A stretch of DNA of 64,000 bases, taken from Bugula neritina (taxonomy: Eukaryota > Animalia > Bryozoa). The stretch covers positions 8,709,751 to 8,773,750 of the forward strand of contig OZ037773.1 of NCBI GenBank assembly GCA_964035545.1, given 5' to 3'. The notes under the pieces are model-generated. The model ran no database searches and was not told where the DNA came from. It worked only from the letters and a program-made list of their open reading frames with translations. Both the position numbers and the translations under genes were made by a program. Below, piece by piece: positions 1 through 56,200 of this stretch; the stretch's first letter is position 1, and each line of letters begins with the position of its first letter.

Positions 1-189
1 TGCAAACTATAAAAAGAAATGCGAAAAGTGCACATCTTTATTATCAAAGCCACTATTAGGTGTTCGAAAAAGCCTTTCAACTACAGCAAAAGTATCAAAA
101 GTAAAGTGTACGTGAAGCAACAATTTATTATTTTCCCACCAAATGCTAAATATTACAAAAAAACAATTGCTAACTGTATTAAGAAAAGT

Positions 190-1150
190 CTAATGATGTT
201 TCCAGAAATCATGAATATTGTTGAAGTGGCTGAACCAGCTCTTTCCTGCGTATTGAGGTCGGCCAGTGGGTCTGTAAAAGAGGGCACAACTCTCACAATA
301 TCATGTGGTTTGCAAAGGGGTAAATAAAGCTTGTAGATGATCCATAAATGAGTGTGACAAAACTATAACACTGCAGGCTATCATAAGGATGAGCAAGTAA
401 GAGTTGCCTCCTCAATGCAAAGTTTTTAAAATATGAAAAGCTTGAATTGCTTTCTAAGAACTGGGGCTATAAGCAAAAGGAGACAATGTTTATCTTAACC
501 TGTTTGTTAAGCTAAAAAAATCCCAAAACTTGACAGTTTGGTTTCAGTCTTAGTAATCTTCCCTACAAACCATGTTAAATTATGTTCACAACAAGGTTTT
601 TAAAGCGATGCTTTTTTTCAACTCATGAAATCAACACAGACCCATAAAGTAAGAAAATATGTTTGGTAACTCAAACTGTGTAATGTTAGTATGAAATTAT
701 TTATTGGTGTCACAAGTATTAGTCTAAGACTGAGTTTCACTCACCGCCAGTTCACCGGTCTCCCAGTAGGCCTGCAAAAACAAATAGTTGTTAGGTAAAT
801 GATAGCTAATACCTACATAATATTTCTCTACCAACTTTGCTACACCTGTAAATATTATATTACAATTCATAAAAGCCTAACCACACAGTATTTTAATGTA
901 TAAAACATCTGCATGAGTAAATTTTAAGCTTAAAGGATTGCTCTATCTTGTCTAATAAATGGCCATTTAGGTCAAACACACATAATATTGTGTTTTTCTA
1001 AGCATGCATTGACAAAAAGCATTTGACCAAAGGTAGAAAAAGTTAGTTGAAGTTGAGGGTGTAAATGTCAGTCACGTGCAAATGTCAGTCATGTGCACGT
1101 TACTGCACGTTCACATGCCTTAAGACGTACTGATGGTTACTGGAAGAGGC
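190..1150 (-). CDS. 3' exons of a small RPTGRP-family peptide gene (paralog of the gene at 11869-14436); first/signal-peptide exon not located
   Basis: Exons 1150-1131 (ASSSNHQ), 771-745 (27 nt, phase 2-2, PTGRPVNWR) and 271-190 (PTGRPQYAGKSWFSHFNNIHDFWKHH*). All have AG acceptors, the first two have GT donors (gtacgt, gtgagt), and the phases are compatible. Motif and exon phases match the + strand paralog. Confidence 0.7.
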
Positions 1151-1656
1151 CTGTGAAGATTAAAATAACTGAGGTACAATGCTTATATATCTCAGACCTG
1201 GTTTTGTCTAAAATACCACCAGGATAATATGCTGGTGGTATCTTTTATATTATTATATAATATATATTATAATATAACGTATATTATAATATATTATAGC
1301 ATATTATATATTATTATTATATATTATAATATATTATAACATCATTATGTGCAATTGAGATGTTTGGGACCATTGAGACTGTAAGCACACAGGCAATACA
1401 GGTATACCAAAATAAAAATCCAACATAAAGCTTTCAAAACAACTTGAAAAAATTATTTAAATTTGACTCCTTGAAATGTTGGTCGCAGCAATACTTGGCA
1501 AACAAAATCTGTATTGTTATATAGGAGTTATTTCCTTTCTTCTTACACACTTCAGTTCGTATATACGTCTTATAACCGTTTATTTCGTAATTATCGTATT
1601 GTTTAGAAACGATCACATAAGAGGCGAGGTTGCTCTGTCACTATAATTTAAACAAC

Positions 1657-2884
1657 ATGTCTGACACAGCAAGTACAGGTGAAAAACAGCCTCACTCGAG
1701 TACATCAGAAATTTTGAAGATTGCAAAAGATTTTTCGTTTGATCAAAAAATAAGTGTCGTTCAAAGTATTTTAGCTTCAATTCCTAGAGAACGTCAAGCA
1801 CCATGGAATGATCAAACAGCTAAGAGAAATTCAAATTTTGCTTCTAAACAAATAACTCAAACTGGGGTTACACCTACTGTTGAAGCTGAGAATACCTTAT
1901 TGAATTCCCGACTAGAAAAAGAGATTTCACGTGATGGTACTACAGCTAATGAATCTTTTAATGAACAACTTGATAAACAACAAGTAACTGAGAGATACTC
2001 GCTTGTTGGAGAATCTATCAGCGCATGCCTTCAAACTCAGCAACCTCCACTGGTTGATCCTTACGAAAAATCTATGAAGTATTATGAAAAGCATATGATA
2101 TTGAACAACTTTCAGGTAAATTACTAATAAAATAATATTTTTAGTAATTTTCATTTAGTAAAATAAAATGGCTAAATTAAATTTTAAATTTGCGTATTAT
2201 TACTTTCTTGCCTTCAAGTTCAATTTAAACATTCTATTACTATTATATTATGCAAAAACCTGTATACCCGGTTGATTCTATAGTGTAGGTTTCATAAACA
2301 AATTATTCTTTTTTTTTATTAAACTAAAAGCATTTACTTTTATTGACTAGGGTTTCTAGATTTCTACTCAATAATTATGCTTCAGTCATACAAGTCGTTT
2401 GTGATATTCCATAACCTTTGTTGCATACAACGGAAACTTTCCATTCAAGCCAAATTGTTTGTAGCATATGACTGCTAAATTGGCTCTACGAAGACCTGAA
2501 GATGCTTTGCAATTCATGATTGATTGGTGCAAGCAGATGCAAATACGACAAGCTGATCAGCAGCTGAAGTCAAAGGCTCTTTATGAAGACAATAAAATAG
2601 ATGTGTATGATGAAGATGGTGGCGAAACAGAGCAAATTAGCAAGAATGCGATTCCATCAGGAGTAAAGAGTGAGACTGAGTCCGGATTAAAGAGTGAGAC
2701 TCAATCAGTAACAAAAAGTGAGACTGAGGTAGTAGTGACTACTAGTAAAGATAAAGATGACTCAGGGTTGGGCGGAGCTATGTCGAGCATGCTCAGTGAT
2801 AAACACACAAGTCAAGAGACATGGAGCGATAAGAAGTCACAAAACACTTCCACAAGTGAGAGCAACTCCTTATCAACTTCCTAA
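1657..2884 (+). CDS. TEX55: TEX55-like protein with a dimerization/docking (RIIa/Dpy-30-type) domain; exons 1657-2115 and 2465-2884
   Basis: A phase-0 GT-AG intron joins DPYEKSMKYYEKHMILNNFQ to HMTAKLALRRPEDALQFMIDW, which resembles the TEX55 DD motif (DP..S..YMEKH.I..FQ.IT..L...PEDPL.FM). The flanks are Ser/Thr/Glu-rich low complexity. Confidence 0.7.
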
Positions 2885-3316
2885 AGTCAAACCATCATCC
2901 TTCAACAGTTAAGAAAGTATATAAAAAAGATGGCCGAGTAGCCATAGTACAATGTATAAGTATGATATTTTTGTTTTATATAATCATTCATTTTATTTTT
3001 TAAATATATAAAATTCACACTGTGGCAGTTACTGTGTTCAACAAATATATCTATAGCAAAGCCACAAGCAAAGGTCTGTTTGGCAATAATCTTCTCTTTC
3101 ATTTGTCTGCACTTGAGTGCATTGATTAGAAATATATTTACAATTGATAATATTTACAGTATAAAAACCGAATGTGTAAGTTACTAGCACCTTCCTAGAA
3201 ACGTAATGCAAGAAGAAATCATTTGTGTATAAAAACAATCTCATGATTTTCAAGTACACCACAAGATCCGTGTTCTCCGAGACTTCCTTCTGCACCAGTG
3301 TAAGGTACTAGAGAAG

Positions 3317-5582
3317 TTACTTCTTATCATTGTAGTCTTCCAGCACGTCGCCCAAGTGATCATTAAGCTTTTTGAAGTTCTTTCCTTTTCTGTTATTGCC
3401 GCCTCGTCTCTTTGGTAAAGCCTAAACAGAAAGTTATGCTAAATTGAGTGCAAATATCTAAAAGAATTAAAATACTTCTAGCCTAGCTTTTACTATATAG
3501 TCTTTCTATCATCTCTTTAAAATACATCATCAAGTATACAAATATTTTTCGTAAAAATAGTAATACAGGGCTAAAAAATAAAGTGAGTGAATAATTATAA
3601 TACAAGTTATATTCTATGAACATTGTATGAAATCAACAATAAAATGAAGAAGAAGGAGAAATAAACTTTCAAGTTACTTCAACTAATAGAGACAAACAGC
3701 TACTACATCACTCAGGTGTAGCAAACTTACAATACGTTTCAGACCAACATGTTCCATTGAGGCAATGCCCTGTTTCTGCAGGTAGTCTTCTATGGTTTTA
3801 TCATCTATTCCGTCGACTGCCACAGCACGCCAGTGCTTTACAAATGCTGCATGTGAATATAATGATATAACAGAATAATATAGTAATATAACAGAATAAT
3901 ATTGTAATATAATACAATAATATAGTAATATAATACAATAATATAGTAATATAATACAATGATACAGTAATATAACACAATAATATAGTGATATAACACT
4001 ATAATATAGTAATATAATACAATAATATAGTATTACAACACTATAATATAGTAATGTGACAATATAGAACAAGCATGGATAAAATGTGTACTATAAATAG
4101 CTTCTAGTAGCATAAGGAAATGCAGCAGTTATTATATTATGATGGGGGGATACTTACCCTCCTCCACCTTATACTCGGCATCAGGGCTCACATCCTTGAA
4201 GTACAAAACACGCTTTTTATCAGCTCTCTGCAGCACAGTGATCTTACCCATATCCCGCAGTTTCTGGAGACGGGAAAGTAAAATACACAGTACATCGGAT
4301 TCCAGCATCATCATTCATACATAGAATAAACTGTACTGATTTTAGAATAGTCTTGGTATTGTTGATGAACGAAGTATGTCATCCAAATGTGCCAAAGAGC
4401 TATATCAGAATGAGCAATGATTAAGGCATACCACAATGACCACCAATGACTATATTAGGGTTATGTAAGTACTATCAGAGTGAGTAGGTATTATCAGAGT
4501 GAGTAGGTACGATATCAGAGTGAGTAAGTACGATATATCAGAGTGAGTAGGTACTATATCAGAGTGAGTAAGTACGATATATCAGAGTGAGTAGGTACTA
4601 TATCAGAGTGAGTAGGTACTATATCAGAGTGAGTAAGTACGATATATCAGAGTGAGTAGGTACTATATCAGAGTGAGTAGGTACTATATCAGAGTGAGTA
4701 GATACTATATCAGAGTGAGCAGGTACGATATATCAGAGTGAGTACGGAGAACTAAACAAGACAAGCACCTCTATATGGCGCTTAGCGTCTGGTAACGCCT
4801 CCTCTACTTGGTCCTCATAAATTCCCCCCAAACCTCTCCGGTCATTTTTCTTGAGATAAATTAACAGCTCTTTACGATTGGATATCGGCAACGCTGGTTT
4901 AAACTGGAACTTGTCACCGTCCACAACTAGCACCTTCCCATTGTTCATCAACGCTTCCTCCGCCAACCAAGTGCGATGTTTAGTAGACAGGTCTAACATC
5001 TTAGCCTCATCTAGCAGTTCGTTTAAAGACAATGGGTAGTTGTCTCCCCTGTGGTGTCGTTTCTTGAGATACTCTATAACCTTGTGTAGTATAGAGAACT
5101 TGTGTGAGGAAGTGGGTACTGCTGTTTTGTAATCTATCGGGGCACTGGTTGAAGTAGAGGGTGTCGACCAATTAGGTTTGGCTTTATCTAAATATAAAAG
5201 TTTATCATTGTGCTGCAATAAAATTTGAAACCTGTTAATTGAAATACTAGAAAAAATTCAGTGTAAATAAAACCTGCAAATCTTGTTAAACATACTTGAT
5301 GCTATCGCGTGATTGTGCTAAACTAGTGAAAGAAAGAAGGTGAATAAGTTTAAACAAATTGTTTGTTGAATGATTCTTGAAATTCATTGATGAGTGTAGG
5401 ACCAGTATTCTGAATAAAGTATACTAACTGATGCAAACCACTCAAACATCAAAAGTTTATTTACTTATTGGTTTGGATTTGTTCAGCAGGGAATCATCTT
5501 TTCTTGGTTTTTTCTCAACTGTTGGCTGGGCAAGAGCTCGTTTTCTAAAAGCCTCCCTCTCTTTCAACAAGGCAGCATCCAT
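3317..5582 (-). CDS. GTF2E2: General transcription factor IIE subunit beta; exons 5582-5465, 5187-4769, 4263-4158, 3846-3731, 3421-3317
   Basis: MDAALLKEREAFRKRALAQPTVEKK start, winged-helix motifs (HKFSILHKVIEYLKKRH, WLAEEALMNNGK, FKP, GLGGI), FVKHWRAV..IEDYLQKQGI and C-terminal NDHLGDVLEDY. All introns are GT-AG with consistent phases. Confidence 0.95.
3858..4060. repeat. ~21-bp AT-rich minisatellite in a GTF2E2 intron, directly next to the acceptor at 3847
   Basis: Repeated aatataatacaataatatagt-like units. Confidence 0.9.
4470..4745. repeat. 21/23-bp minisatellite in a GTF2E2 intron, near the donor at 4768
   Basis: About a dozen copies of tatcagagtgagtaggtacta / tatcagagtgagtaagtacgata. 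Confidence 0.9.
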
Positions 5583-5899
5583 CTACAAGATGGCAAAAGC
5601 AGCATATGATTATGACAGTGTCACTGACTCATTCCATTTATGAGATACTTGGTTTCTATCATGTGTCAGTTTCATTTTATATATCTATATTTATTATATT
5701 TTGTATATTTTTTATATCCGTAACAGTTAGACTTAGTGATATAAAAGTTAATAACTAATTTTGATAATCAATAGAATTATTTATACTTATAAAGATAATT
5801 ATTACTATTGATGACAAAAATAGCCACATTAATGGCCACAATAACTTGGCTTAAAGTTAATCTTAATCTAATTCTCATTACCTAGTTATTGTTCAATTT

Positions 5900-6904
5900 T
5901 ATCTCACCAGAGACATTACAATACTGACATTAGTAATTATTTTTGAGCTTTTCTGAGTACTAACTAATCTTAATTTTAAAGTTATTTTTAATCTACAGTT
6001 CCTTATTAGTTATTACTTACCTAAAGTTAAACTTAAAAACTTATACTGTTACACAATTTCAATATGAATATGACTGCATCATTATTATAATCAGTATTAC
6101 GTTTATAATATCATTAATACTATTAAAATGCAATTTTATGAACCTGAACAACTCTTACTCTTAGTCTTACTCTTAGCTACTTAAAGTTACAGGTAGTCAC
6201 TCACTCACTCACTCTCAGACAGTCTGGGATTAAGTCGCAGTCTAATAGCAATATCAAGAGTCACACTTCCAGTTAGTGTGAGTGTCACTGCCACACTCTC
6301 ACTCCGGAGTCTGACTCACAGTCACTGTGACAGTAAAACTGAAAGTGAATGTGACATCAAACTCAGAAACTCAAACTGAAACTTTATCAGTTTATGTATA
6401 ATTCATTAATTGGATTTTTTAAAATGGTAATCACTCACTTAATGGTTTCCCGCACAGTAAATAAAAGAAAGTCAGCTGAGAATATGAGTTTGTATACTTA
6501 TACTTATAGCTATATATGATATAATGATATTGATGCTATAATTTAGTAATACTAAATACTGAAGTACTAACAATTAAAGGGTACACCAATATTAAAGGGA
6601 AGTTCAAACTTGGAAAACCAATTTTTATAAGTTGACCTTGACAAATAGCAACTACAATATTGCCTTCTTTAGTAGTTTGAGTCTTCAGATTTTGCGTTAT
6701 CTTTGAACGGCTGAAAGGTTCCCCATCAATAATTTGTCTATGTAAGGTTCTAAGGCTATAACACCCATAAGAGAGTTGCTGAGCGACTTTCGCTAAGTTT
6801 TGACACGGTGGTGAAATTTTCAACTAAATTTGAGTTCAGACCCATTCCATGATCTTAATTCTTAATACTAAAAGCCAACATTTGTTTACGAAAATTTATG
6901 GATA
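5900..6904. promoter_or_regulatory. Probable bidirectional promoter region between GTF2E2 and YIPF4
   Basis: The two genes are head-to-head with start codons about 1.3 kb apart. The GTF2E2 ATG is immediately preceded by an acceptor, so a 5'UTR exon should lie in this interval. TCACT/TGACT-rich tract at about 6190-6390. Confidence 0.5.
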
Positions 6905-10024
<3,120 letters not shown>

Positions 10025-11868: not shown

Positions 11869-14436
11869 ATGAAGGTTTTGATTGCTCTTGGCGTGCTCAT
11901 CGCTTGTGCCTTGGTTAGTCCATAATTATATCTCAAGTATTTATGAGAAAAAAATTAAAAATTATGCTAGAATTGCGTTGAGTTACTTAAAAATCAATTA
12001 GGTTACCCCTCATTCCTGGTGCTTCAAATAAATTTAGAATGTTTATATTGTGTGATTCTCAAAATGTATTTAACTTCAACTTATGTATTTAGGAATATAT
12101 CTGAATATAAGTTTCATTTACTTGTCTATAATTTAGGCTCAGTTCCATGGTGCCCCTCACCACCACCACCCGGGACATCACCACCCACCAAGACCTACCG
12201 GACGTCCAATGATGGTAGGATCTCTGTTTATATCTCTTGTCTCATCTATCTAGTGTTACTGTATCTACCACATAGTGATATTTATTATATACTCTATATT
12301 ATGTTGACAGCCACATGGTCCAATTGGATTTCACCATCCATTGTCTGGAAGACCAACTGGTAGACCTCATCACATGCTTCATGTAAGTCAGTAGTTGAAT
12401 ATTTTATAGTTGACTAAATACACGAGTTTATATAGTTAGTATATGTATAGTATCTGTAGTATACTGTAATATAATAATATACTATATTATATTACTGTGT
12501 TATAATATTATATGTCATATCCACCAACCAGGGAGCTGCCCAGTTCTGGCAGAATATGAGAGACAGAGTGGAGGCATGGAGAAAGTCTCAGCAAGATCAG
12601 ACAGACGTTGAGGGAGATGAAACTGCAAGGTATGTATGTCTATAATACCTGTAGAATCTGTTGATATGCTTTCTGTAGATCTGTAGAATCTGTTGATATG
12701 CTTTCCGTAGATCTGTAGAATATGTTGATATGCTTTCTGTAGATCTGTAGAATCTGTTGATATGCTTTCCGTAGATCTGTAGAATCTGTTGATATGATTT
12801 CTGTAGATCTGTAGAATCTGTTGATATGCTTTCCGTAGATCTGTAGAATCTGTTGATATGATTTCTGTAGATCTGTAGAATCTGTTGAGATGCCTTTTTT
12901 ATAAATAAGATTTGCCAAGTATTTATTCAAAGCTAGAACCTGTATCAATTTAGTCATACAATGGAATAAAATGTTTTATTCAAGAAAAAGATCACTTATA
13001 GCTGACGACTTTATTTTTTTTTGATGAAATTTATAATATTTTCTTCTAATCGATATGTTTAGCTCAGAGGGGAAACTTTTTACATTGTTTATCTTACAGA
13101 TGGAGCTCCTGGGGGCGAGGTAACTTCCGATTCTCATGGAATCCTTATTTTCAGAGCATTCTGGGAAGACAATATGGCAGACGGTGAGTGCCTGAACTCA
13201 CTCTTTAATGACATGTTCTTAGAACTTTATAGTCTTTTCAACTATATAATACTTATAATGATGAGACGTGAAAATTTATTTACAAATATAAAAACACACG
13301 AGTTTCATTTATAATATTTTGTGCTGCGACTTTGTGAATTATATGCCAGGTGATTGAAATATATTGCTTGTTTTTAGGCCAACTGGTAGACCAATTGGAA
13401 GACTGGGACGACGGTAAGTCTAACAGTATATATTCTAGTTGCACTGTCCTCACCAGCAAATCTGATAGATATTGATCAATTATGGCTAGCAGGCTAGTGT
13501 AAAAAGACAACTCTTAAGCTGCACTATTATATTACAGCTAAAATTAATTTGTATTTTATTTTTAGACCAACTGGTAGACCCATGCATATGAGGTGAGCCG
13601 CCTAATGTCATATATTTATATTTTTTTAAAACATATTTTTCTATATGTAAGAAAGTATTGGAAATCACATTATCTAAAGAATATTAATAGTATTTAATTT
13701 CCAAATAACAAAAGAAAAACAAGTGCCTGGAAAACAGTTATAACTTTTACATGGGAAGCCAACTCCTAAAGCGCACAGCTTATTCTGTTCACTGGCCATA
13801 ATGATCAGGCAATATTTGCCATTGATACTAAAGTGAGAAATCTGTCTATATGGTTTACTAGGGCTTCAGTAACAGGTTTTTACTCTTCGATTTATCCTAG
13901 TAATTACAATAGTATTGTGTATAATTTATTTTAGACCAACTGGCCGGCCCATGCATGTCCGGTAAGTTATATAACTCTAATTTTTGTATACTTATTCTAA
14001 TTTAGATAATATAATTTGACATTTTTCCAAGTCAAAAATGACATTTAAGAGCCAATTTGCTCCAGCTAAAAGATTAGTAATTTTATAATATTTTATTCTC
14101 TTGTGAAAATTGAAAACTCCTAAAATTAGTAACTTAAGTTTCACAGGCTGTTTGAAAAGTTTAAATTGCATTTCTGCAATTATTTTTTTAAGATCAATTT
14201 GTGAGAAATTAATTACTGTGCGTCTACATAAGCCTCAGGTAGCCTGCAGGTCATGTGACGACATGTATACTCAGGTAGCATGTAGGTGATGTGGTTACAT
14301 GTGTTGTAGACCCACTGGAAGACCTCAGGGCCCCTTCAGGTTTGGAAAGTTCAACAAGTTCGGAGGCAGAAGACACGGTGGCAGAAGATATGGTGGCAGA
14401 AGATATGGTGGCAGAAGATATGGTGGCAGACACTAA
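11869..14436 (+). CDS. Secreted His/Pro/Arg/Gly-rich protein (197 aa); exons 11869-11913, 12137-12214, 12311-12382, 12532-12629, 13100-13183, 13378-13413, 13566-13592, 13935-13961, 14310-14436
   Basis: Nine GT-AG exons sum to 594 nt in one open frame: MKVLIALGVLIACALAQFHGAPHHHHPGHHHPPRPTGRPMMPHGPIGFHHPLSGRPTGRPHHMLHGAAQFWQNMRDRVEAWRKSQQDQTDVEGDETARWSSWGRGNFRFSWNPYFQSILGRQYGRRPTGRPIGRLGRRPTGRPMHMRPTGRPMHVRPTGRPQGPFRFGKFNKFGGRRHGGRRYGGRRYGGRRYGGRH*. It has a signal peptide, an upstream TATA box and AATAAA at 14470. Confidence 0.88.
12649..12892. repeat. 32-bp minisatellite in intron 4 of the RPTGRP gene
   Basis: About 7-8 copies of ctgtagaatctgttgatatgctttctgtagat, starting about 20 nt after the donor. 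Confidence 0.92.
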
Positions 14437-53273: not shown

Positions 53274-56200
53274 AGCTTCATTAGCACAAGAATATAGCAA
53301 ATATCTGCAACAGAACATCTGAGGATATATATTTATATTTTTCTCACCTTTCTCCGCTTTGTCCTGTTTGGTAGCTGAGGATATATATTTATATATTTTT
53401 ATAAAAACTTGAGAAATATTCCTAAATATAACAAGTACGTCTTTAAGTGGAAAAAGTGACAAAAAGCTTTCTAAAAGTTTCTGCTAATACTGTTAATGTT
53501 TGAACAACATATCAGTGCAAAGTTTACTATAAGCCGTAACATAATACCTGTAATAGACTATGTAACCGAAACTATGTAAATATGCGTAGGATATAATATA
53601 CACACAGAATGACTAGAGCACCTCACCTGTCATTGACCAGTTCATGGTTCTTCTAAGTAGCACTAGAGACTCATCAAAGTACTCTGTAAACATGACCAGT
53701 TTGAATCTCCTCTCCACAAAATCGATGTAATCTTTAATAGCTTTCTTGTCGTCAGACCTCTTCACGTTAAAACCTGTAAATTGGTAAAGTTCTAAAATAC
53801 TAAACAAAAGCTCATTTGAAACAATAGGGCTGGTGCATTAGCCACCCTCAGTTATGTAGAATACACATTGATTGCACTATTGCCAGAAACCTCACAAAAC
53901 CAATTTACCTAGATTATTATATTGATCAAATTGAACAAGTTTCAAAAATTGGTCTAAAGTTCTACAAAATTTATAAAATTTGACAAGCAGCTTTTCACAG
54001 TAGCAGGTAAGAGGATGCTAATTTAGAGATCAGCCAAACATTTGTTCAGTCAGGGTATCATAACTTCTAACAGCATTAAAAAACACTAGATGTCTTTTTG
54101 TGCTATAATTTGCTAACTTCTATAAACGAAACGTGTTCACTAAATGTTTCCACTTTCAATTCAATCCAAGCTATTTGGTCTAGTCATAAACGAGTTTCAA
54201 GTGCATATTTTCGGCGCACATAAAAGTGCAACCCAGATCATTACGTTTTAGCAACACGCAAGTGGAACTTATTGCTTTATTTATAAGATTTTAAACGTGG
54301 TTAAGTTTTTTTCAAGTATTGAGTTGGTTTTTTCGAACTGTGTTAAAAAAACTTTGCCCGAAGGTAGTACTGGCTTACTTAGCCACTTGAAATGGTACCT
54401 AGCCATTGAAGGTGATTTTATCTCACCTAACTACTGCTCGTGGGATTTTATCTCACCTAGCCACTGAAGGTGGGATTGTCTCACCTAGCCACTGAAGGAA
54501 GTTGTTGTGAACGTGTCTCTGCATGCCGGTAATGAAGCTCCTCTTCTTATAGAATAACTTGTCACTATGGAGCACCTTCTTTGGTGAGACTCCTCTGGAA
54601 GAAGACATGCTGATACTACACAACACTAGCTAGACATGCTGATACTACACAACACTAGCTAGACATGCTGATACTACACAACACTAGCTAGACATGCATA
54701 CTAATTATACTCTGTAACAGTTTAGCTAATTTATACTGAATAAAAAATATTTTAGTTTGTATGAAGAATGTATCAAATTCTATATATTTAGTATATAATA
54801 GCCCATATTTCAGTTAATATGTAATGTGTTTTATATTTGGTACCGAGTATATAGTATATTTAAAGTGAAAGATGTATATGCCTATTGAAATTGCTGTGAC
54901 TTACTGGTAGGCCTTCATGAAGTCAACGTAAGATATGAACCATTTGACTGGATGTCGTAGGGACGTGATGTACACAGTCTCATTGGGAAAGTTTTTAGTA
55001 TAGAAGGTGTGGTTATATCTAGCATGCTGTTCCATAATGTGCGGATGACTTCTATTGTGGGGCCCAACATCCCATGAGTTCCCAGGCTCCAACTCTCTCG
55101 TATTGACCAGACTTTCTGTAACACAGGCTAAAAGTTGTCAACTCTGCATAATTTTTAATGAATGGACTCAAACTTTCCTTCCATGTTGAGTAACATACTT
55201 TAAATAATGAGTTAGAAGAAGAATTGATATCAATTTTCTGCCTACTGTATCAGGAATGCATTGGTAGTTGTTAAGTACCAGAAGTCAGTTTATAGTAACA
55301 CAATGTAATTAAATGGCTTGCGTTTACAATGTAGTACATTTTTAACAATGTACGTATATGCACTAGCTAGTAAGAAATGCAATTATACAAAAGCTGTACA
55401 GCAAGATAATATATTAACAATGGTGCCATACAAGCAAGGAGGAATACTTTAGGCTAGTGTATAGCTTATACGATAAAATGGATAACTCTGTCACAGCAAG
55501 TTAAAACAGTAAACTTAATGCACGGACATAAGAAAGCCTGAAAAAAGCAGTGGGTATATATTGATTGTGACTTTGGTGATGTTCGAAATTTTTAAATAAT
55601 TATATGTTACCACCAACTACAATCAGAATGACACATATTCTGCCTATAGCTGGGTACAAATTCAGGGATGTAAAGAAGGGCACCCAGTAATTTCTGCATT
55701 AAATTGAGGCTCCTAAGCCTAACAAAATTTATTGTTCTAAAGAAATTCCCAATACTAGTGAAATGACCTAACAAACAGCACCAATATAAAGCTACTTAGA
55801 AACATGCAGACCTTTGCAATGTTGACATAGTCAATTTCTATTTGTTGCCTGAGCAAATAATGTTATACTAGCTAAGCACTTTTTTCTTTGAAAATTAGTT
55901 TTTCTGTAGTGTGAGATTATTTGAAGGTGATTCTGTGGGAATATATACTTATAGCCGATTGGTCTGAAGAAATAAATATTAGTACCAACTAATATCAAAC
56001 TTTTACAAGTTATTCTGTGGCTTTGCCAAAGTATGGAAAACTGAAAATAATTTATTAACAGTAGTATTTCATGTCCCTTCCAGGTCTTGTGTATAGCTAA
56101 AGTGCCAGAGCTATGGAAATACTTGAATGCCAAATGAATTTACTTTTAATATGGAAAGATAACTCTTGCAAACTGTTCAAAGCATGCAATACTAAAATTC

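Follow-up and report, generated by a model that had tools for sequence, protein, structure and literature searches.

The Minus-Strand Locus and Its Surroundings

The region analysed (the window) is a 64,000-nt stretch of chromosome 9 (positions 8709751-8773750; GC content about 33%) in the Bugula neritina assembly tzBugNeri2.1 (GCA_964035545.1), which comprises 216,009,554 bp in 9 chromosomes (PMC11480708). Close to its left end, three pieces of the minus strand can be joined in frame, with phases running 0 to 2, 2 to 2 and 2 to the end (Table 1). Their translations are ASSSNH (1150-1133), PTGRPVNW (770-747) and PTGRPQYAGKSWFSHFNNIHDFWKHH followed by a stop codon (270-190), and the codons split between them are restored as Gln (CA at 1132-1131 plus G at 771) and Arg (CG at 746-745 plus A at 271). 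The same translations and phases had been given in an earlier note on this DNA and were reproduced exactly. The motif of the terminal exon is a complete RPTGRP, reading (R)PTGRPQ, and that of the microexon is preceded by Q when the 20-nt exon is joined to it and by R when the acceptor AG is read through.

Donor sites were scored with a generic donor matrix made by the authors. The donor of the microexon (GCG/gtgagt, the exon ending in CG) scores 7.1, a value reached by fewer than 1% of the GT sites of the region. The 20-nt exon has a fair acceptor (cttcacag/G) and a weak donor (TCA/gtacgt, score -1.06); due to this donor it is the least certain of the three pieces. The AATAAA hexamer beyond the stop codon constitutes weak evidence for a poly(A) signal, since the DNA is only 33% GC.

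The locus lies head-to-head with a Tex55-like gene at a distance of about 500 bp. Pfam matches to Tex55 (E=1.4e-4, below the Pfam cutoff), TFIIE_beta and Yip1 bear out the TEX55-GTF2E2-YIPF4 block named by the earlier note. The intron that separates the 20-nt exon from the microexon carries a fragment, truncated at its 5' end, of an interspersed repeat that is very young and present in many copies. Candidate copies number 469; the 40 that were scored are 96-100% identical and are spread over all chromosomes. Other copies reach further 5' and have the 3' end ..gagcaatcctttaag in common. An AT-rich microsatellite of the (ATAATATAT)n type occupies 1245-1340, between the candidate 5' exons, and similar AT-rich arrays are present at 3815-4097, 7731-8000 and 12430-12526. 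No Rfam match was obtained in positions 1-3000 of the window.

The suggestion that more copies lie to the left of the window failed: P[TS]G[RK]P is absent, in any frame, from the 9.75 kb on that side, and the other members are located megabases away on chromosome 9 or on chromosome 2. The tblastn matches in the left flank were discarded as reverse frames of plus-strand G/Y/H-rich open reading frames. Two reading frames for low-complexity proteins that look secreted lie 2-3 kb from the window on the plus strand (L026 6638-7057 and 7321-7905), neither with a Pfam match; in one, a signal-like start (MIRILALAVVMAGVNS) leads into a body rich in G/Y/H/N, and the other consists of N/G/Y repeats (NGNVNYGNGYNGNA..).

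Table 1. Features at and around the minus-strand RPTGRP locus (positions in the window; a slash marks an exon-intron junction)
Feature	Position	Strand	Remarks
Poly(A) signal-like hexamer AATAAA	124..129	-	61-66 nt past the stop codon; read from the sequence
Terminal exon	190..271	-	A completes Arg codon CG/A, then PTGRPQYAGKSWFSHFNNIHDFWKHH; stop TAG 192-190
Terminal-exon acceptor		-	ccctcttttacag/A; good pyrimidine tract
Example peptide within the tail	terminal exon	-	SWFSHFNNIHDFWK
Intron, microexon to terminal exon	272..744	-	473 nt
Microexon, 27 nt, phase 2-2	745..771	-	G/CCT ACT GGG AGA CCG GTG AAC TGG/CG = PTGRPVNW
Microexon splice sites		-	acceptor tttgtttttgcag/G (tttttgcag), good pyrimidine tract; donor gtgagt
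Young interspersed repeat, 5'-truncated fragment	925..1066	-	in the intron between 20-nt exon and microexon
Candidate 20-nt exon, phase 0 to 2	1131..1150	-	ASSSNH + CA; uncertain
TATA-like word TATATAA	1183..1189	-	33-39 nt upstream of 1150; read from the sequence
Start option A (speculative)	1391..1426	-	first ATG downstream of ~1616; peptide MLDFYFGIPVLP; ends in phase 0 at CCT/gtgtgc
Start option B, exon 2 (speculative)	1408..1442	-	signal-like, no ATG; ..VVLKALCWIFIL; phase 1 to 0
Start option B, exon 1 (speculative)	1696..1705	-	ATG TAC TCG A/gtgagg; donor 3.2
RPTGRP paralog, nine exons	11869..14436	+	signal peptide, His-rich exons, four exons beginning at PTGRP, GGRR(H/Y) tail

Relationship to the Plus-Strand RPTGRP Gene

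The nine exons of the plus-strand gene are, in order, one for the signal peptide, two that are rich in His and have an internal RPTGRP, two that are rich in Trp, three microexons and a last exon. The microexons measure 36, 27 and 27 nt (the latter two being exons 7 and 8), are all of phase 2-2 and all begin at PTGRP, and the last exon reads (R)PTGRPQGPF.. followed by GGRR(H/Y) repeats. In intron 4 of this gene (12585-12928), a 32-nt unit (ctgtagatctgtagaatctgttgatatgcttt..) occurs eight times in tandem. The minus locus mirrors the last exons of this gene in size, phase and start, as had been noticed earlier: both possess a 27-nt phase 2-2 microexon starting at PTGRP, an Arg codon split by an intron and a terminal exon starting (R)PTGRPQ, and the products of both are cationic, cysteine-free and rich in His and aromatic residues. 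They differ in that the minus locus has two modules whereas the plus-strand gene has six, and in that the minus locus is without the His-rich N-terminal exons and without a recognisable ATG or signal exon. The tails are also different, an amphipathic W/F/H segment at the minus locus and GGRR(H/Y) repeats in the plus-strand gene.

The window contains eight occurrences of the PTGRP-coding 14-mer CCNACNGGNMGNCC, where 0.03 would be expected, and none of 100 shuffles reaches this count; two of these words belong to the minus locus and six to the plus-strand gene. All eight are perfect, and allowing one mismatch in the window scan adds a single unrelated site at 54900, with no decayed copy at either locus. 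Across the 216-Mb genome the AG-prefixed motif pattern has 24 matches, against 12 for the reversed control. A chance resemblance to exons at a place that has never been one would draw on the shortness of the pieces and on nothing else; given two motif copies that share a strand at a spacing of 500 nt and lie 11 kb from a gene with six copies, splice sites placed exactly at the family phase and a control that yields so few matches in the whole genome, this explanation is effectively refuted.

Outside the motif, no DNA similarity connects the two loci. Introns and untranslated regions of the minus locus could not be aligned with those of the plus-strand gene, and the best alignment covers 37 nt around the motif at 73% identity (E=0.044), the remainder being AT-rich simple sequence. 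Within the plus-strand gene, by contrast, the microexons have intron sequence in common at 72-82% identity, so that the two loci separated long ago, well before the internal duplications of the plus-strand gene. The motif codons of the minus locus (CCC ACT GGC CGA CC and CCT ACT GGG AGA CC) show only synonymous differences from the plus-strand copies, and about 20 constrained or non-degenerate motif positions have remained intact, and so have all four splice dinucleotides belonging to the two exons. In the half of the microexon that lies outside the motif, identity with exons 7 and 8 of the plus-strand gene is about 45% by our own count. Preservation of motif and splice sites despite the loss of intron similarity argues for long-term constraint, and in one part the argument is not circular, because copies with one mismatch are absent.

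The C-Terminal Tail

The earlier note had described the tail as a His/aromatic, possibly amphipathic segment in place of GGRR repeats, and both properties were recovered. Trp, Phe and His account for 9 of 21 residues, a proportion matched by 0.2% of the open 21-codon stretches in the window, and the last 18 residues have a helical hydrophobic moment of 0.44, where shuffled versions average 0.20 (P=0.011). In composition and amphipathicity the tail thus looks like coding sequence in the style of the RPTGRP family. On the other hand, the frame that stays open beyond the motif is short: for 20 codons to remain open by chance at this base composition, we calculate a probability of about 21%. The two solid exons and the junction Arg (35 residues) carry a net charge of +4 (3 Arg and 2 Lys minus 1 Asp), with 5 His uncounted.

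The tail is single-copy in the genome. Queried as a 36-aa open frame against 1.84 billion representative proteins, from a source collection that includes Logan assemblies, it found no relative, and the 102-aa antisense reading frame covering the terminal exon likewise had no match; both are weak blanks. One match to the tail (P0001, E=4.8e-4) was rejected as spurious, being a repeat-derived reading frame. Exons were searched individually; in Pfam-A, no match was obtained with the tail, with exons 4 and 9 of the plus-strand gene or with exons from the chromosome 9 relatives described below. The exact-protein look-up of a reading frame neighbouring the minus locus returned no record, and a metagenome scan with the Tex55-like exon returned no match, again weak blanks. 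A homology search with the Tex55-like exon identified one 38%-identical Logan contig (L034), in which the 540 bp upstream contain no motif.

Candidate 5' Ends and Alternative Readings of the Locus

Between 1150 and the ATG of the Tex55-like gene at 1657 (plus strand), no ATG-first exon with a good donor is present, and no convincing start codon or signal-peptide exon was found within 1.5 kb upstream. What had been called a second RPTGRP gene therefore stands as an opposite-strand locus across the Tex55-GTF2E2-YIPF4 block, but not as a complete gene. An ATG-first exon at 1022-981 was ruled out as it lies inside the young repeat fragment (1066-925).

Two start options may be considered (Table 1), both of them speculative. 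The donor of option A scores 0.1, and its peptide is weakly hydrophobic with poor signal-peptide character. In option B, the mini-exon is antisense within the first coding exon of the Tex55-like gene (1657-2124, plus strand). This antisense ATG with its donor may be due to chance or may be an overlapping head-to-head first exon. The second exon of option B has the acceptor ttttttcaag at the 1443/1442 junction and a very weak donor (TTG/gtatac, -3.9), and its frame is preceded by a stop; it ends in phase 0, which is the phase needed by the 20-nt exon. The 15-residue joined N-terminus would have a hydrophobic core with a mean Kyte-Doolittle value of 2.73 over 9 residues. A two-exon start model as good as this one, which was found post hoc, occurs in 4 of 600 random 650-nt segments. 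As a homologue of exon 1 of the plus-strand gene, exon 2 of option B was rejected, its local alignment score of 8 being met by 9% of random windows.

If the TATATAA word were used, with transcription from about 1155, the 20-nt exon would become a non-coding leader with no in-frame ATG downstream. The exons might then be spliced into a non-coding or differently framed transcript, for instance an antisense RNA from the Tex55 promoter region, and no RPTGRP peptide would be made. The placement of this word 33-39 nt upstream of 1150 and the head-to-head arrangement with the Tex55-like gene across a gap of some 500 bp are consistent with such a transcript. Nevertheless, TATA-like words are common in DNA of 33% GC, and a non-coding role would account neither for the purely synonymous variation of the PTGRP codons nor for the preserved family phase. 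We regard this explanation as distinctly improbable.

A less remote explanation is that the locus is a relic, namely an old partial (3'-end) or start-less RPTGRP duplicate that is untranslated, its two exons having stayed intact or having lost constraint only recently. Such a relic would agree with the missing ATG-initiated signal exon of acceptable splice signals, with the fact that the sole signal-like open frame (1442-1408) has no start codon and a stop before it, and with the contrast between the weak donors of the 5' candidate exons (-1.06 for the 20-nt exon and -3.9 for gtatac) and the strong splice sites of the 3' exons. The tail without a second genomic copy, the lack of any transcript or related protein in the tail and antisense-ORF searches, and the young repeat inserted in the locus point in the same direction, although the insertion is neutral between the readings because of its intronic position. 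However, neutral decay sufficient to erase intron similarity should also have struck the motif and splice positions under constraint, about 28 in number, of which none has changed, and the tail retains the composition and amphipathicity of the family. The relic is thus a reading to be taken seriously, though we doubt it.

We favour, at a probability of about 0.5, the reading that 771-190 on the minus strand represents the two final exons of a real paralog, maintained by selection, of the plus-strand gene, with a very small, cationic product.

Other RPTGRP Genes in the Genome

The genome-wide search proposed by the earlier note (the AG-N-CCN.. pattern) was carried out and revealed three further motif genes, two on chromosome 9 and one on chromosome 2. 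The excess of matches over the control consists of clusters, namely the two loci of the window, C2:25.096 Mb, C9:6.20 Mb and C9:4.409 Mb; single matches on C1, C5, C6, C7 and C212 were dismissed as chance, with short open frames and a control-level rate. All four other RPTGRP genes, including that on the plus strand of the window, begin with signal peptides. The idea of a reusable RPTGRP module with a varying C-terminus has accordingly held up: the motif is present in several genes for secreted proteins, and the tail of the minus locus differs from that of the plus-strand gene.

The gene at C9:4.407-4.410 Mb (minus strand; L027 2036-5000) has four exons and encodes a secreted protein of 128 aa with three RPTGRP motifs. 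Exon 1 reads MNSFTTLLLATA, exon 2 reads VFGVAYGSQLKL, and exon 3 contains ..WWDDAQKALSESWA-RPTGRP-SFPRFPVFPEFNHD-RPTGRP-MLPPYPNFIDHL-RSTGRP.., the third motif being RSTGRP in the genome. A 128-aa protein (P0003) from the Logan assembly of SRR4020085 is 93% identical to it. The corresponding 1,039-nt contig from SRR4020085 (L045) maps to the gene in four blocks with 97, 94, 93 and 84% identity, the values of 93-97% belonging to the coding exons and that of 84% to the last exon and 3'UTR. The splicing of this gene is thereby confirmed by a transcript of a close relative, from a Bugula-type sample. The protein is small, secreted and aromatic-rich, with its motifs 12-14 residues apart, and has an EAWRK segment in common with exon 4 of the plus-strand gene. 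It differs from the minus locus in having the motifs inside one exon, a clear signal peptide and transcript support, and the tails of the two are dissimilar. The RPTGRP family is therefore real, and it is expressed at C9:4.409 Mb.

The second chromosome 9 gene (C9:6.200-6.205 Mb, minus strand; L025 about 2400-6640) has multiple exons, with a frame containing MNFATFFCLFVAVVSTF followed by several exons that combine an amphipathic helix with RPTGRP; one motif copy reads RPTGTP. One of its introns contains a long microsatellite whose open frames read (NIH/IIY)n.

The chromosome 2 gene (C2:25,096,228-25,097,429; L003 1399-2600) has a non-coding first exon and encodes a secreted protein with the signal peptide MWKISAILALAGLALASA and about 12 tandem 16-residue units YRPTGRPVDQSPYRPT, which match the Pfam PT repeat (E=6.6e-12). 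Its Cys-rich last exon has a weak match to the CBM_14 chitin-binding domain (E=0.0035, below the Pfam cutoff). RPTGRP(V) is found both in this repeat protein and in the microexon of the minus locus, whereas the long tandem repeat within a single exon and the Cys-rich C-terminal exon set the chromosome 2 gene apart. The exact 20-nt word TACAGACCCACTGGCCGACC is common to the chromosome 2 repeat and to positions 276-257 of the window, against only 11 nt in common with the plus-strand gene. In the chromosome 2 gene this word encodes Y-R-P-T-G-R-P, whereas in the minus locus its TACAG is the 3' splice site.

In the literature, 'RPTGRP' was found only as an unrelated string, and a search for SRR4020085 and for Bugula adhesive transcriptomes found nothing relevant.

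Possible Nature of the Product

Under the preferred reading, in which the minus locus is a maintained paralog, the well-defined part of the product would be ..PTGRPVNW-R-PTGRPQYAGKSWFSHFNNIHDFWKHH, in which an amphipathic His/Trp/Phe tail comes after two RPTGRP modules, and the locus would represent a 'mini' RPTGRP member giving rise to a very small cationic peptide. This peptide is most likely secreted, if the four other RPTGRP genes, all of which start with a signal peptide, are a guide. For the minus locus, expression, secretion, the motif role and the 5' exons, with their weak candidates, are inferred.

RPTGRP may be a portable short linear motif. It is taken here as a recognition motif of that kind because it is invariant amid variable surroundings and is present in proteins that are built differently. 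As a guess, it could serve as a recognition site for a modifying or binding partner that is extracellular or belongs to the secretory pathway, for example in O-glycosylation of the Thr. A Thr that has Pro at -1 and +3 is favoured as an acceptor in O-glycosylation of the mucin type, and the Thr of RPTGRP has Pro at both positions. The variable tail, in turn, could confer member-specific binding, with an aromatic/His face that might adhere to surfaces, membranes, metal ions or a chitinous matrix.

With regard to biological role, we lean towards the cuticle or an adhesive matrix, as the weak CBM_14 match in the chromosome 2 relative and the neighbouring low-complexity genes would suggest. The marine cement and cuticle proteins, such as the Pc proteins of the sandcastle worm and the mussel foot proteins, are low-complexity, basic and rich in G/Y/H/K. 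They are secreted, rich in His and aromatic residues, taxon-restricted and built of repeats, and their likeness to the RPTGRP proteins is compositional only; we know of no sequence relationship between the two. The reading frames of the left flank, G/Y/H-rich in one case and N/G/Y-rich in the other, are likewise comparable with such proteins.

The alternative is a defence peptide. The predicted minus-locus peptide resembles glycosylated proline-rich antimicrobial peptides such as drosocin (GKPRPYSPRPTSHPRPIRV) and pyrrhocoricin (..LPRPTPPRP..) (PMC7736402) in being small, cationic and secreted with an R-P-T..R-P core. Drosocin carries its glycosylation on one specific threonine (10.1101/2022.12.11.519952). 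The class is defined by a Pro content of at least 25%, a net charge of at least +1 and antimicrobial activity with an intracellular target, DnaK or the 70S ribosome (PMC7736402, Box 1). While the charge of the minus-locus peptide (+4) lies above the threshold, its Pro content of about 11% (4 of 35 residues in the two solid exons) is too low, and it shows no PRP motif and no homology to these peptides. Owing to its Pro content and the absence of the PRP motif, it is not regarded as a proline-rich antimicrobial peptide.

A broader idea, which we consider unlikely, is that RPTGRP serves as a signal peculiar to bryozoans and portable between exons, which has spread among otherwise unrelated secreted proteins and has the minus locus as its minimal member. 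It could be recognised by an enzyme or a binding partner, extracellular or of the secretory pathway, for instance in glycosylation, cross-linking or processing. The carriers of this signal would be the repeat protein whose match to a chitin-binding-type domain is weak, the helix-rich proteins and a protein rich in His and Arg. Its spread could have been aided in part by the Y-R word TAC-AGA, which may double as a 3' splice site (TACAG/A) and so yield phase-2 microexons. The minimal member would then have a signal peptide ahead of two modules and a single amphipathic His/Trp tail, and might act as a host-defence or surface-binding peptide.

Significance

The minus locus is an ordinary unconfirmed paralog and not a discovery. 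If it is a relic, it merely documents the turnover of RPTGRP genes. It bears on annotation in either case, since its pieces give no Pfam match. If it is expressed, the orphan RPTGRP gene would not be a singleton but would belong to a small family of secreted proteins that is confined to its lineage, in an animal of major importance in fouling. As a minimal member, an expressed minus locus would present the conserved module apart from a tail that evolves freely and thereby offer a handle on the function of the motif, whether in glycosylation, cross-linking, chitin or surface binding, or defence.
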